A stretch of 64,000 nucleotides of DNA, taken from positions 186,001 to 250,000 of the IMG/VR virus record IMGVR_UViG_3300034072_001021. One strand, given 5' to 3'. Below the pieces are notes generated by a model. It searched no databases and had not been told where the DNA came from. It saw nothing but the letters and a program-made list of their open reading frames with translations. Made by a program: the position numbers and the translations under genes. Shown one piece after another: positions 5,062-41,337 of the stretch; the first letter of the stretch is position 1, and every line of letters begins with the position of its first letter.

Positions 5062-5434
5062 AGCTGCTCTGCGCGGTCTACTGACATCGTCTATCTCGGT
5101 TCAGTTTGCCGGCCTTGTCACCTTCTGGCGAGACCTGATCAAAGAGAACATGACTTGCAATGCCATCGACTTGTCGTGGGATAGAACGCTACTAACCGTG
5201 GAGGAGGCTTTCGAACCTCTTCTCGAATCTTTAAATGTCTATGTGGAATCTCTGCGCGAATACGGTAAGATCGATAACCTTATCGTGGACGTTCTCGGAT
5301 TAAATGCAATAGACGGTAGCGTCATAGTGAGGATAAGTGATGGCCGAGACAACAGCCATAATCCACGGCGCCGGGATCTACAAGAATTTCCTAAGCGACC
5401 TGTCACAGGTCATGGATCATTCGTACGATATTGA
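4925..5434 (+). CDS. hypothetical protein, array member 7 (start uncertain)
   Basis: ORF tiles the gap and ends in VDVLGLNAIDGSVIVRIS plus a tail. Confidence 0.55.
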   Translation: MTMMMNGHSSNSNPAMNLTLPLTLVLQLDSRHVERTDRLLLIPAIEAALRGLLTSSISVQFAGLVTFWRDLIKENMTCNAIDLSWDRTLLTVEEAFEPLLESLNVYVESLREYGKIDNLIVDVLGLNAIDGSVIVRISDGRDNSHNPRRRDLQEFPKRPVTGHGSFVRY

Positions 5435-37403: not shown

Positions 37404-38225
37404 TTACTCCGACAGCTGCTTCACACGACTCTTGACGTGCTTGAAGATTTGCTGGGTTGAGAAAATATCGTCATGCAGGTTCTCAACGTAGAACATGACT
37501 TCGTCTTGAAGCGCTTCGTTCGATACGTTGGTGTGCAGGGCGATCGAAATGAGGTCGTCTGCCACGACTTCCGGCTTCCCGGAGAGAAGACGTTCCTTGT
37601 TCTCATTGATGAGTGTCATCGGGTCTTCGTAGAGAACGCCGTTCTGAAGCGATTCCAGACCGATGGTCGTTGCAGTACCGACCAGATTCTGATGTTTATT
37701 CAGAACCTGTACGATTTCCTGCAGACCTTGTTTGGCAACTTCAGTGTTCTCGATATTTCGCTGGACAGTTTCATTGATAACAATGATGACATCCATCGGT
37801 ACATCCAGAACGTACTCCATGAGTTCTTCAGGAATCCGATTGGTCAGTAGCGCGAGGATGTCGGTGAAAATCTCAATGCTGTCTTCACCAGCCTCGATGA
37901 TGGCTTTGATTTCTTCATCAAAGTCACTGGGCTTGAAATGAAGTGCATCGAGGATCTCTGCCAGAATGTCCATGCGCAGACGTTCGAGATCCAGACCAAT
38001 GTTCATCTGCTGAAGCAGTGCAGCAACTTGGGTGTAGATGATCCCGATGGCACGATCTGACAGGGTCAGTTGGTCGTGGACGTTAGCCTCCATCTTGAGG
38101 TTAACGATTTGATCACGCCACAGAACAGCGTCGTGTTTCTGAAGTGCAGCAGCCAATGAAGAAACCCCGGCCATCACTTCGGGACTTACGCGGTTGACGA
38201 GAATGTCCGAGAGTTCTTGAAACAT
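37404..38225 (-). CDS. conserved helical protein (gp81-like position)
   Basis: 273 aa, aaggt RBS, co-oriented with the vRNAP gene. Confidence 0.75.
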   Translation of the reverse strand: MFQELSDILVNRVSPEVMAGVSSLAAALQKHDAVLWRDQIVNLKMEANVHDQLTLSDRAIGIIYTQVAALLQQMNIGLDLERLRMDILAEILDALHFKPSDFDEEIKAIIEAGEDSIEIFTDILALLTNRIPEELMEYVLDVPMDVIIVINETVQRNIENTEVAKQGLQEIVQVLNKHQNLVGTATTIGLESLQNGVLYEDPMTLINENKERLLSGKPEVVADDLISIALHTNVSNEALQDEVMFYVENLHDDIFSTQQIFKHVKSRVKQLSE

Positions 38226-38322
38226 CGGTGTTTACCTTTCATAAAAAAAGTTTACTCAACCTAGTATGAGTAAAAGTACAAATAATTGGCCGCCCTTAAT
38301 TTAATAACACAAGGTCTGTGAA

Positions 38323-38727
38323 ATGAGTGAAGTGCCCAAGACACCATACCAAAGTTTGGAACAGCTTAAAAACAGAGCGTTCAATAGCCTGTATCGTTAT
38401 GCCCAGTCGACCCGTGACATCGCGGTTCACAACTGGTTATCTGTCGAGCGTAAAGAACGTGCTCTCGTTCTAGCGGGCTTCATCAAGAAAGACCTTGGAG
38501 AATTCCGCATCCGTCACAGCAACCTCGGCGTTGACTTCGACAAGCTGCCGGGCAAAGTCCGTCAGCACCCCCATCACCCCGAGATGCTGAAGATCGGTGG
38601 TCGATACATTACCTTAATCGATGAACTGGAAGCTACCGTCGGCGCACGTGTGCGTGAGATGGTCGAGCTGGTCACCTATGACATCGACGAAATGAACGAA
38701 ACCGTCAAGAAACAGGCCCAATCATGA
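38323..38727 (+). CDS. hypothetical protein
   Basis: 134 aa; stop overlaps the next start. Confidence 0.8.
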   Translation: MSEVPKTPYQSLEQLKNRAFNSLYRYAQSTRDIAVHNWLSVERKERALVLAGFIKKDLGEFRIRHSNLGVDFDKLPGKVRQHPHHPEMLKIGGRYITLIDELEATVGARVREMVELVTYDIDEMNETVKKQAQS

Positions 38728-40331
38728 GTGACGAACAAAACAACGAAGGCATGGAATCCATCGACGGCGATCCGATGGCAGAAAATGCAATCCCGAATGA
38801 TGATGCGGCTCCTGCAGCTCTCTTCGAGGAAGCTACTGTCGCTGCAGCAGCGAACATCGAGAACGAAAACCATGTTGAAGGCAGCGAGATTGCTAGCCCG
38901 ATCGACATGGAGCAGATCTGGGCGGATCTGGACAAGCCGAATAGCCACGTCACGATGGATTCGACTCCGACCGTCCGTCGTAAGACCGATCCCAACAAGC
39001 CGTATCTGGCTGGTCTGAAGGTTGGTATCGAAGAGATGGAAGCAATCCTCCAATCTCGTGGCCTGACCAACCTGTCCGATGAAAAGATCGCCAACCTCAG
39101 TCAGGAAGATCAGCGCCTGATCAACCTGGCCCGTGCACTGTCGCCTATTTGGCAGAACGTGTACTTCGACGATCTGGACAAGACGGGTGACTGGCATCAG
39201 ACCCTGCTGCACAACGAGACCAAGCTCTCGGCAGGTCGTGTACGCCCCGAGAACATGAAAGATCCGGTGCTGGCTATCCGGGCTACGTTCGGTCAGGGCT
39301 CGGTCGTTCAGGTTCCGCTGTGGAACACTGGCCTGTGGGTTTCTTTCCGTGCGCCAACTCTGCAAGAGCTGGCTGACTTCGATCAGCGTACGCGCATGGA
39401 GAAGATGAACCTCGGTCGTTCGAGTAATGGCATGTCCTTCTCGAACATCGAAGTGTACACTGTCGAGACCTATGCACGTTTCGCCCTGGAACATGTCGTC
39501 TCGGTCAACTATCAGTTCGAAACCGGCAACCATGTCGAAGAGCTGATGACTGTCATCAAGAACCGCGATTACCAGCAGGTAATCTGGGGTATGGTGATGG
39601 CGATGTATCCGGATGGTTATCCGTTCCGTCAGCCGTGTGTGGCCAACACCGACACCTGCAACCATGTGGATGAACTGGTCATCAACTTTGCTCGTATGGG
39701 CTTCGTTGATCGCAGCAAGTTCACCGAGAAGCAGGCGCTCATGATGGCTTCCCGTAAGACCATCCGTGATCGCAAGTGGCTGGAAGAGTATCAGCGTGAG
39801 TTCACGTTCTTCGAGAAACGTATCGTCATCAACGATACCCTCACTGCTGTACTGCGCGTCCCGACACTGCACGACCAGATCACTGCCGGTCATCTGTGGG
39901 TGGAAGGTATCGCCAAGGCAACCAACGAAGCCTTCGGTGCTCGCCTGTCCGAACTGGAACGCTATCGCCACATCATGCGTTCGGGTGAATTGACCAACCT
40001 GCGTCAGCACAGCCACTGGATCGCCAACTTCGAACACGCCGTTGACCAAGACAGCGCACCGCGCATCATCGACGATTACGAGAACAAAGATCGTATTCTC
40101 GAAATGCTCAGTGAAATGCCTGACGTCAGCACCAAGCTGTCCGAAGACATCCTTAAGTGGATCGGTGAATCGACTGTCTCGTACGTGGCCATGCCGAAGT
40201 ACAAGTGTCCGTCGTGCCAGAAGGAAGCTGAAGATCAGAGTCACCCGCACCTGATCCCGATTGACGTGAGCTACGTTTTTTTCACCCTAGCCGTGTTGAA
40301 AATCAGCCAAGTAGAAGGCGCGGCGGTGTAA
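38724..40331 (+). CDS. probable tail/baseplate assembly chaperone (T4 gp26-like traits)
   Basis: 535 aa with an acidic N-terminal IDR, C-terminal YKCPSC knuckle and a slippery site near the 3' end. Function is inferred. Confidence 0.6.
   Translation: MSDEQNNEGMESIDGDPMAENAIPNDDAAPAALFEEATVAAAANIENENHVEGSEIASPIDMEQIWADLDKPNSHVTMDSTPTVRRKTDPNKPYLAGLKVGIEEMEAILQSRGLTNLSDEKIANLSQEDQRLINLARALSPIWQNVYFDDLDKTGDWHQTLLHNETKLSAGRVRPENMKDPVLAIRATFGQGSVVQVPLWNTGLWVSFRAPTLQELADFDQRTRMEKMNLGRSSNGMSFSNIEVYTVETYARFALEHVVSVNYQFETGNHVEELMTVIKNRDYQQVIWGMVMAMYPDGYPFRQPCVANTDTCNHVDELVINFARMGFVDRSKFTEKQALMMASRKTIRDRKWLEEYQREFTFFEKRIVINDTLTAVLRVPTLHDQITAGHLWVEGIAKATNEAFGARLSELERYRHIMRSGELTNLRQHSHWIANFEHAVDQDSAPRIIDDYENKDRILEMLSEMPDVSTKLSEDILKWIGESTVSYVAMPKYKCPSCQKEAEDQSHPHLIPIDVSYVFFTLAVLKISQVEGAAV
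40277..40324 (+). promoter_or_regulatory. Candidate programmed -1 frameshift site (T TTT TTC plus downstream stem)
   Basis: Heptamer is in correct phase; the -1 frame is stop-free into ORF 40340; stem gccgtg/cgcggc starts 7 nt downstream. Confidence 0.6.
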
Positions 40332-40339
40332 GCATTCAG

Positions 40340-40762
40340 ATGAACCTCCATGTGGGCGATCGGAGGTTCGGTTACACGCAGCTACAGAACTACGAGGAAC
40401 CCTCTGTTCTGGACAAGGTGCTGTCTTCGTCCGAAAAGACGCTGGACAGCATTGCTGCACAAATTGTGACTACTGAATGCTACGACGATTATTTTGGAAT
40501 CTACGGGAACAGTTCCCAAGGCGACAGCCCTCTATCTTTGATAGGGATGCATGAACCTGAAGACCTGGCTCTCGTAGACCCGTACGACGTGTACCTTGAG
40601 CGGTACTTGGCTGCCAACGTACTTAAGTTTACGGGGATGACGTTTCAAGAGTTCATGACTCTTACCAAAGATCGTGGTGAAGCTATCCTTCGGCGTTGCG
40701 ATGCCATGGCATCGAAAGAAGACTCAGAAGTAGCCCATCTGGTTGCTGGAATGAAGCCATAA
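40340..40762 (+). CDS. probable chaperone partner (T-part-like), possibly expressed as a frameshift fusion
   Basis: No evident RBS; lies in the -1 frame of the upstream gene; GMTFQEFMTL motif resembles tail chaperone C-terminal parts. Confidence 0.65.
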   Translation: MNLHVGDRRFGYTQLQNYEEPSVLDKVLSSSEKTLDSIAAQIVTTECYDDYFGIYGNSSQGDSPLSLIGMHEPEDLALVDPYDVYLERYLAANVLKFTGMTFQEFMTLTKDRGEAILRRCDAMASKEDSEVAHLVAGMKP

Positions 40763-40792
40763 AGGCAGGGGGTAAATCCCCCTGCTTTCTAT

Positions 40793-40819
40793 TTCGAATT
40801 AAAGGAAGTTATACATTAT
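40793..40819 (+). promoter_or_regulatory. TTCGAA-N12-ATACATTAT motif
   Basis: Exact match following a terminator, upstream of the macro-domain gene. Confidence 0.7.
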
Positions 40820-40890: not shown

Positions 40891-41337
40891 ATGTCATTGG
40901 ACATCATCGAAGCCGATCTCTTCGATATCCAGGCAGATACCAAAGTCATCACGATTAACCTCGTTGGTGCCATGGGTGCAGGTGTCGCAAAGACTGCCAG
41001 AGATACAATCCCTGGACTGTATAAGCATTACAAGAAGATGTATCCGACTATCACACCGGATCAATTCATCCAGTATACCTACGGTGGAGTGAAATACCTC
41101 CTCGTCCCCACGAAGATTGATTGGAAAGCTCCATCGCCTCGTGACCTCGTATTGTCCAACCTTCACCGGTTGGCGTATCTGACCCGACGCTATAACGGGT
41201 TTGGTACAGTAGCCTTGCCACCAATGGGGTGTGGTAATGGTGGGCTGGATTGGGAGAATGATATCGTGAATTTCTATCACGCGTTGTTCGACCACCATCC
41301 TAGTAAATTTATAGCAGTAATAAAACCAAACCAGTAA
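40891..41337 (+). CDS. macro-domain ADP-ribose hydrolase, DarG/TARG1-like
   Basis: ADLF, N.VGAMGAGVA, PTKIDW and ALPPMGCGNGGLDW signature segments. Confidence 0.88.
   Translation: MSLDIIEADLFDIQADTKVITINLVGAMGAGVAKTARDTIPGLYKHYKKMYPTITPDQFIQYTYGGVKYLLVPTKIDWKAPSPRDLVLSNLHRLAYLTRRYNGFGTVALPPMGCGNGGLDWENDIVNFYHALFDHHPSKFIAVIKPNQ

Follow-up and report, generated by a model that had tools for sequence, protein, structure and literature searches.

Near the end of a 535-aa gene of a jumbo phage, a run of seven T's likely causes some ribosomes to slip back one base and thereby add a 159-aa extension to the protein, and the same unannotated arrangement is kept across the family of nucleus-forming (phiKZ-like) phages. 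The gene lies in the window, a stretch of 64,000 nucleotides covering positions 186,001 to 250,000 of IMG/VR record IMGVR_UViG_3300034072_001021. An initial annotation, made from the sequence alone, had proposed a programmed −1 frameshift fusing two tail-chaperone-like genes, and the observation on which it rested is correct. Codons of the upstream ORF (38724..40331, + strand) start at positions divisible by 3, and GTT TTT TTC occupies 40275-40283, so that the heptamer T TTT TTC (40277..40283, +; T7 run 40276-40282) lies in exact X_XXY_YYZ phase, 15 codons (53 nt) before the stop. A TGA at 40262-40264 is in the −1 frame, which is then open from the heptamer through an ATG at 40340 to the stop at 40760-40762. 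The predicted fusion is 520 + 159 = 679 aa, with the junction ...SYVFF-HPSRVENQPSRR. The heptamer is the only in-phase X_XXY_YYZ (Y = A/T) heptamer in the gene and the only A/T homopolymer of 7 or more inside a coding region in the window, and it uses TTT where the rest of the gene uses TTC 16:1.

The 535-aa protein belongs to the phiKZ gp77 / 201phi2-1 gp136 / PhiPA3 gp074 / EL gp47 family (phrog_4585). It displays a disordered acidic N-terminus (residues 1-58) and a confidently modelled core with four conserved cysteines (C305, C312, C495, C498), and it ends in a predicted helix that begins at the FF motif. The gene is preceded in the same operon by a 134-aa gene (38323..38727, +) in the position of phiKZ gp78 / 201phi2-1 gp137, whose stop overlaps the ATG of the 535-aa gene (ATGA), and this synteny is seen in all annotated relatives. 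The heptamer itself codes V-F-F of the conserved ...PIDxxxxFFTL motif. Downstream of it, the stretch 40283..40331 (+) is dual-coding, as the 0 frame codes the C-terminal helix (TLAVLKISQVEGAAV*) while the −1 frame codes a linker predicted to be disordered (HPSRVENQPSRRRGG...). The whole −1 extension (40283..40762, +) comprises 159 codons plus the stop, with a linker of about residues 1-20 followed by an all-helical domain, predicted to be folded, carrying the motifs HVxxxxFG, EcYDxxxGI, PxSLxxxHxxE and EFxxL. It is homologous to 201phi2-1 gp135 / PhiPA3 gp073 (phrog_12109). A gene caller sees only the 140-aa ORF starting at ATG 40340 (40340..40762, +). Directly after its stop is a terminator-like hairpin (GCAGGGGG-taaat-CCCCCTGC) with a T-rich tail (40765..40795, +), and in a phiKZ-type phage the mRNA contigs end just after the equivalent stop.

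Comparative analysis provides much stronger evidence than the window alone. Conservation of the slippery site and of the frame offset in homologs had been set beforehand as a test of the idea, and homologs were found to keep both. In 39 loci from about 24 lineages below roughly 50% identity, the FF motif is coded as T_TTT_TTN in phase in 32 loci, as G_TTT_TTY in six, where re-pairing in the P site is imperfect, and in a degenerate form in one, pVa-21, which has only CTT TTT A. The T-run is thus conserved in 38 of 39 loci, even where TTC is the preferred Phe codon, and in pEa_54 the amino acid has changed from F to L while the run stayed (GTT TTT TTG). Among 24 lineage representatives, the first F is TTT in 23 (product of per-gene TTT frequencies 10^-13.4), and the preceding codon ends in T in 19 against a 29% background (P = 6e-7). 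The −1 frame runs on for 149-176 aa into a homologous helical domain in every locus. From the site to the first ATG/GTG/TTG beyond the 0-frame stop, 1,233 codons contain 0 stops in the −1 frame, compared with 114 in the +1 frame and about 96 expected from the −1 stop density inside the same genes. In addition, 18 of 30 loci have no ATG, GTG or TTG in the −1 frame ahead of the domain's first conserved motif, only four have an ATG, and in about eight loci that motif lies upstream of the 0-frame stop. Gene callers start the downstream ORF anywhere from profile position 6 to 62.

The frame split itself is also maintained, as no in-frame fusion was found among 52 close homologs or among the top 150 of 1,032 profile hits. 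The overlap is nearly invariant at the nucleotide level in the window's clade, and synonymous codon identity peaks over it (0.86 versus 0.60 elsewhere). RNA-seq contigs of a phiKZ-type phage from four studies carry both frames on one contig with the genomic T7 and no indel, although assembled contigs hide minor variants. Both forms look like real proteins, since the 0-frame tail is a confidently predicted helix and the linker and domain of the extension are predicted to be disordered and folded, respectively. The extension uses fewer preferred codons than the upstream gene in all 33 loci compared, yet this measure is partly circular.

A candidate stem-loop (GCCGUGUU / GGCGCGGC; 40290..40324, +) starts 7 nt after the heptamer. 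The initial annotation had described a 6-bp stem, gccgtg (40290-95) / cgcggc (40319-24), which exists and extends to 8 bp. However, it is not thermodynamically unusual (z = +0.1 to +0.4 against shuffles), and 82% of same-length windows in the gene fold as well. While the stem is invariant in the window's clade, RNAalifold shows no covariation there because the region does not vary, and folding of 33 loci across the family revealed no common stem (mean z = −0.64), which does not support it as a conserved stimulator. The statement that the downstream ORF has no evident Shine-Dalgarno was only partly right, as a weak GGTG lies about 11-14 nt upstream of ATG 40340. The argument is weak in any case, since only 30 of 50 genes in the window have an SD-like match of 4 nt or more.

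The most likely explanation is that the gene encodes a core protein of nucleus-forming jumbo phages made in two forms from one mRNA. In this view, most ribosomes read straight through and make the 535-aa protein with its short C-terminal helix, while a fraction slip back one nucleotide on U UUU UUC, with both Phe-tRNAs re-pairing on UUU, and continue in the −1 frame to make a 679-aa protein in which the terminal helix is replaced by a flexible linker and the 140-aa helical domain. What the analysis establishes is the site, its phase, the open −1 frame and their conservation across the family, together with the absence of start codons in most relatives. The trans-frame protein itself is predicted from this comparative evidence, and it is further inferred that the slip is ribosomal rather than transcriptional, that its efficiency is low and the long form the minor product, as the weaker codon bias suggests, and that the pair acts as a fixed-ratio assembly factor. 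As the upstream protein distantly resembles T4 gp26, the baseplate-hub assembly chaperone, the extension may tether a partner in the way the T part of lambda gpGT does.

The interpretation in the initial annotation is therefore partly supported: the core claim of a −1 shift joining the two ORFs and giving two products is strongly supported by comparative evidence, whereas calling them two tail-chaperone-like genes had no basis in the sequence. Lambda gpG/gpGT and the conserved tail-assembly-chaperone frameshift of long-tailed phages (Levin 1993; Xu, Hendrix & Duda 2004, as summarised in PMC5009743) share with the present locus a −1 shift a few codons before the upstream stop, a longer product with a C-terminal domain coded by the downstream −1 ORF, an arrangement rather than a sequence conserved over very divergent phages, the expectation of two products in a set ratio and a possible role in tail or baseplate assembly. 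For the present locus, the shift and its two products are inferred from comparative evidence rather than from experiment. Yet neither part is homologous to lambda G/T or P2 E/E', and no fold relation was found. Furthermore, the upstream protein is 535 aa rather than about 140 aa, the heptamer is U UUU UUY rather than G GGA AAG, and the pair is not next to a tape-measure gene but lies between RNA-polymerase and helicase genes and has as neighbours a gp78-like gene, divergent RNA-polymerase beta/beta' genes, a helicase and a macro/phosphatase-like gene. Phage P2, also contractile-tailed, reportedly uses a −1 shift on T TTT TTG for gpE/gpE+E' (Christie et al. 2002), the heptamer found exactly in pEa_54, but protein sizes and gene neighbourhoods differ. 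A faint ESM Atlas lead from the 140-aa domain to the GpE family (score 0.80) is at chance level and was not confirmed by Pfam scans of 60 members, none of which hit PF06528. In E. coli dnaX (tau/gamma), a −1 shift on an X_XXY_YYZ heptamer likewise gives two isoforms sharing the N-terminal body, but dnaX uses A AAA AAG with an upstream SD-like element and a strong downstream hairpin, and its shifted product is the shorter one, while here no conserved downstream stimulatory structure was found and the predicted shifted product is longer.

Searches for function gave little. Pfam, NCBIfam and PHROGs returned only families of unknown function, with no Pfam hit for either part when 29 and 60 members were scanned at E <= 1. 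PDB sequence-profile searches for both parts found nothing, and Foldseek against PDB found no match for either model. The resemblance to T4 gp26, the hub assembly chaperone (PMC3004832, Table 2; PF12322), is distant and inconclusive, leaving an assembly-chaperone role plausible but unproven. Both proteins have a CxxC followed about 14-20 residues later by FF-x-L at the C-terminus, and a second upstream Cys pair. Foldseek against BFVD matches the predicted core to models named 'Baseplate hub assembly protein, T4-like' (E 5e-5 to 1e-2, TM about 0.5 by target), related ESM Atlas clusters carry PF12322 in 14-24% of members, and the annotators of DT01 and AH06 made the same call. However, PF12322 hit none of 29 members even at E <= 1, and NCBIfam gave no hit. 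The hhalign probability was only 4.5% (E 0.009), although exactly the C-terminal CxxC...FFxL motif was aligned, and it was 15% for a single sequence against the family profile. T4 gp26 is also shorter (208 aa), its FF is coded TTC TTT without a slippery run, and it is followed by gene 25 rather than by this domain. T4 gp51 was considered as a counterpart of the extension and rejected (hhalign probability 0.9%).

Among alternative explanations, transcriptional slippage survives best but appears unlikely. Here, the phage or host RNA polymerase would stutter on the T7 template run and add one U to a fraction of transcripts, and these mRNAs would encode the 679-aa fusion in a single frame, with the same outcome of two isoforms at a set ratio but with the recoding at the RNA level. 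The conserved element is indeed a homopolymer (T6-T8 in 37 of 39 loci) that could equally serve polymerase slippage, it is kept in pEa_54 although the A-site codon becomes Leu UUG, no conserved ribosomal stimulator structure was found, and these phages use their own unusual multisubunit RNA polymerases, whose slippage behaviour is unknown. On the other hand, runs of 5-7 are short for efficient slippage by known bacterial RNA polymerases, where 8-9 or more is typical (e.g., PMC5009743). Where the run is only T6, it usually still forms an exact in-phase T_TTT_TTC (YongMS31, BONAISHI, LAh10), and the four RNA-seq data sets show only the genomic length, which is weak evidence since contigs drop minor variants.

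It is less likely still that no recoding occurs and that the downstream domain is an independent small protein, translated from its own canonical or non-canonical start or by termination-reinitiation, with the T-run simply being how a conserved FF motif happens to be coded. In the window, ATG 40340 lies 9 nt after the stop and exactly at the N-terminal boundary of the predicted folded domain, so that independent initiation cannot be excluded there and the 140-aa protein may also, or instead, be made on its own. The window alone is in fact the weakest member of the family for the argument against independent initiation. A few relatives (BONAISHI, IMGVR_f, RAY) also have an ATG near the junction, and FF is conserved in T4 gp26 without a frameshift. 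Yet, phiKZ-type phages have no ATG/GTG/TTG for 219 nt past the stop, which would delete about 85 conserved residues, and the start-codon counts, the conserved motif coded upstream of the 0-frame stop, the stop-free −1 frame, the codon choice against bias and the elevated synonymous-site conservation all stand against this reading. Finally, although homopolymers are error-prone in sequencing and can vary in length in populations, a broken single gene or a phase-variable tract is very unlikely, since the same −1 split occurs in 39 independently sequenced genomes and metagenome contigs, three DNA runs hold the window's exact words, no genome or examined homolog is in the fused state, and the 0-frame tail after FF is a conserved, confidently modelled helix.

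It could be speculated, although this is doubtful, that the locus is the functional counterpart, in phiKZ-like and perhaps other T4-related contractile phages, of the G/GT tail-chaperone frameshift that reviews list as conserved in long-tailed phages 'except T4'. A gp26-like hub/tail assembly factor would then carry a frameshift-added domain recruiting a partner (tube, tape-measure or hub protein) at a fixed low ratio, which would link T4 gp26 evolutionarily to the frameshifted chaperones and make the long isoform an essential, so far unannotated, core protein of all Chimalliviridae.

No paper or annotation was found that reports a frameshift in these phages, no paper was found that describes phiKZ gp76/gp77, and the 'gp77' mentions found belong to other phages' numbering. 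As far as these searches could tell, it would be the first recoding event described for this intensively studied family, and it lies in a conserved gene of unknown function to which it gives a direct experimental handle. The tentative tie to T4 gp26 also bears on an old gap, namely how T4-type and jumbo myoviruses do without the G/GT-type chaperone frameshift. If the shift is real, every sequenced nucleus-forming jumbo phage (234 records matched here) is mis-annotated at this locus, with the downstream gene given arbitrary and often truncating start codons and a core protein of roughly 680 aa missing from all proteome lists, essentiality screens and structural inventories.

The initial annotation had described a slippery heptamer with an open -1 frame at this locus, and reading the sequence and listing its ORFs confirmed this observation in every coordinate. 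ORF 38724-40331 (535 aa) carries the codons GTT TTT TTC at 40275-40283, placing T TTT TTC (40277-40283) as an in-phase X_XXY_YYZ heptamer 15 codons before the stop. The -1 frame has a TGA at 40262 and is then open to the stop at 40760-40762, passing through ATG 40340, and a slip would give a product of 520 + 159 = 679 aa with the junction ...SYVFF-HPSR.... The heptamer is the only in-phase one of this type in the gene and the only A/T run of 7 or more inside a coding region in the 64-kb window, as the other three A7/T7 runs (19241, 38243, and 48704) are found in short AT-rich intergenic spacers. The run at 38243 lies between the divergent genes 37404-38225(-) and 38323(+), and these runs could be parts of phage promoters or terminators. 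The stem noted in the initial annotation exists and extends to 8 bp from +7, yet it is no more stable than shuffled sequence or than most windows of the same gene. Likewise, the claimed lack of a Shine-Dalgarno sequence before the downstream ORF is a weak argument, as there is a marginal GGTG and only 30 of 50 genes here have a clear Shine-Dalgarno. In addition, a 524-aa ORF runs antisense across almost the whole 535-aa gene (38676-40250, -), which is probably a by-product of the strong codon bias of the sense gene rather than a real gene.

The nearest cultured relative of the 259-kb IMG/VR contig IMGVR_UViG_3300034072_001021 is Pseudomonas phage pPa_SNUABM_DT01, with 63% identity for this protein. 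Using tblastn, the 535-aa protein was found in 234 jumbo-phage records infecting Pseudomonas, Erwinia, Salmonella, Serratia, Klebsiella, Ralstonia, Vibrio, Aeromonas, and others. Record notes identify it as the phiKZ gp77 / 201phi2-1 gp136 / PhiPA3 gp074 / EL gp47 family, while the downstream ORF corresponds to 201phi2-1 gp135 / PhiPA3 gp073. The pair always follows a gp78-like gene and lies near RNA-polymerase and helicase genes, not tail genes. The next gene in the window (40891-41337, +; 148 aa) hits phrog_335 "phosphatase" (E 4e-23) and, weakly and below threshold, the Macro domain (PF01661, E 0.006), and it may be an ADP-ribose-binding or -processing protein, although it is not conserved at this position in other lineages.

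To test the frameshift comparatively, 39 loci were collected, spanning about 24 lineages that are mostly 15-30% identical to the window. In all loci, the conserved C-terminal motif ...P(I/L)D....FF(T/I)L is coded with a T-run, which takes the in-phase form T_TTT_TTN in 32 loci, G_TTT_TTY in six (PhiPA3, FLC9, Noxifer, Phabio, and two metagenomic relatives), and a degenerate CTT TTT A in Vibrio phage pVa-21. In pVa-21 (2610-2640 of its locus, L023), the run has decayed to GTA CTT TTT ACG, yet the -1 frame is still open into the downstream domain and no start codon precedes the conserved motif. In pEa_54, the second residue has become Leu while the run is kept (GTT TTT TTG), which points to selection on the nucleotides rather than on FF. 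In codon choice, the first Phe is TTT in 23 of 24 lineage representatives, although TTT is the minor codon in most of these genes (window 1:16, Xoo-sp14 0:14). Without correction for phylogeny, the product of the per-gene frequencies is 10^-13.4, and the preceding codon ends in T in 19 of 24 against a background of 29% (P = 6e-7).

From the slip site, the -1 frame runs on for 149-176 aa in every locus. The stretch between the site and the first ATG/GTG/TTG past the 0-frame stop, which need not be open if the downstream ORF started on its own, amounts to 1,233 codons and contains 0 stops in the -1 frame and 114 in the +1 frame, while about 96 are expected from the -1 stop density inside the same genes. 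The extensions align as one domain with the motifs HVxxxxFG, EaYDxxxGI, PxSLxxxHxxE, and EFxxLP. Eighteen of 30 loci have no NTG codon in the -1 frame ahead of the first conserved motif, only four have an ATG, and in about eight loci the motif is coded before the 0-frame stop, inside the upstream gene. In phiKZ-type phages, the first in-frame start is 219 nt past the stop and would remove about 85 conserved residues. Accordingly, GenBank annotations of the downstream gene use inconsistent starts that cut off conserved residues, being TTG in DT01 (5171-5260 of its locus, L001) and 201phi2-1, GTG in LucasX, and internal ATGs in Xoo-sp14, Eowyn, PhiPA3, and the phiKZ type (the junctions of the collected loci L003, L004, L026, and L022 among these annotations), while in RAY the gene (gp266) overlaps the upstream gene by 136 nt. 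None of these is annotated with ribosomal slippage. Similarly, in a profile search of 1.8 billion representatives, the called ORFs begin anywhere from profile position 6 to 62. None of 52 close homologs (478-574 aa) and none of the top 150 of 1,032 profile hits (95-182 aa) is an in-frame fusion. The split itself is conserved, as expected if both products are needed. Finally, the 54 nt from the run to the stop are almost invariant in the window's clade while the flanks diverge, and synonymous-codon identity there is 0.86 against 0.60 for the rest of the gene, the highest of any segment.

RNA evidence comes from a phiKZ-type locus obtained from IMG/VR (L037), for which contigs assembled from four independent RNA-seq studies each cover the 3' part of the gp77-type gene, the T7 run, and the whole -1 ORF in one piece, with no indel at the run. 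While contigs cannot exclude a minor slipped RNA species, the dominant RNA carries the genomic frame split and ends after the extension, as the nanopore cDNA contig terminates with a poly(A) tail 13 nt after the stop of the -1 ORF. In the window, a hairpin with a T-tail (40765-40795) sits in the same place.

AlphaFold2 with 40 homologs gave a confident model of the 535-aa protein (pLDDT 82.5, pTM 0.81), in which the N-terminal 58 residues are disordered and the last helix (515-534) begins at the FF motif, so that a shift would swap this helix for something else. The extension, modelled with 60 sequences (pLDDT 83), has a predicted disordered stretch in its first 15-20 residues, which is coded by the overlap and would thus act as a linker, followed by a compact all-helical domain from about residue 21, exactly where ATG 40340 lies. 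Neither model matches anything in the PDB, and sequence-profile, Pfam, and NCBIfam searches likewise returned nothing. Against predicted viral structures, the core of the large protein matches its jumbo-phage homologs first and then 250-285-aa models named "Baseplate hub assembly protein, bacteriophage T4-like" (E 5e-5 to 1e-2, TM about 0.5 by target), and ESM Atlas neighbours carry PF12322 in 14-24% of members. An alignment of the gp26 family built from T4 gp26 homologs ends in CxxC...HVHVIxGLKEFFKL, the same CxxC-spacer-FF-x-L C-terminus as in the jumbo-phage family, and hhalign aligns exactly this region, yet with a low probability (4.5%). A relationship to T4 gp26, which is listed as a hub assembly chaperone (PMC3004832), is plausible but unproven. 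T4 codes its FF as TTC TTT and has no extension ORF. In T4 (7803 of locus L041, genes 26/25), gene 25 starts on the last base of the stop codon of gene 26, only three codons after the FF motif of gp26, and the gene after gp26 is therefore also in the -1 frame, although no slippery run is present and gp25 is unrelated to the extension domain described here.

The best-supported reading is a -1 ribosomal frameshift on U UUU UUY giving a major 535-aa form and a minor 679-aa form. While the site, the frame offset, and their conservation are observed directly in the sequences, the ribosomal mechanism, the fused product, and its lower abundance are inferred. The weaker codon bias of the extension fits a lower translation level, as the fraction of preferred codons is 0.34 against 0.62 in the window and is lower in all 33 loci, yet this measure is partly circular. 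In the window, codon usage drops sharply across the junction (40340-40759 compared with 38724-40274), with CTG accounting for 28 of 39 Leu codons upstream against 5 of 15 downstream, CGT/CGC for 29 of 30 Arg codons against 2 of 6, and GGT/GGC for 22 of 22 Gly codons against 4 of 9, and the same direction is seen in all 33 loci. Transcriptional slippage on the same run is the serious rival and cannot be excluded with contig-level RNA data. Independent initiation of the downstream ORF explains the window itself, but not the family. Sequencing error or phase variation is excluded by 39 concordant genomes and the absence of any fused state among these, the 52 close homologs, and the top 150 profile hits.

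The initial annotation had interpreted the locus as a candidate frameshift fusing two tail-chaperone-like genes following the logic of lambda G/GT, and this interpretation is only partly supported. The logic matches lambda G/GT and P2 E/E+E', yet the proteins, gene neighbourhood, and size do not fulfil the criteria for membership of that family. Among the papers and GenBank records that could be reached, none describes or annotates this recoding, and no joined CDS occurs in 25 annotated regions. While -1 recoding of this kind is already known from lambda and P2, the locus is regarded here as a family-wide, so far unannotated -1 recoding site, inferred from comparative evidence, in a conserved gene of nucleus-forming jumbo phages.
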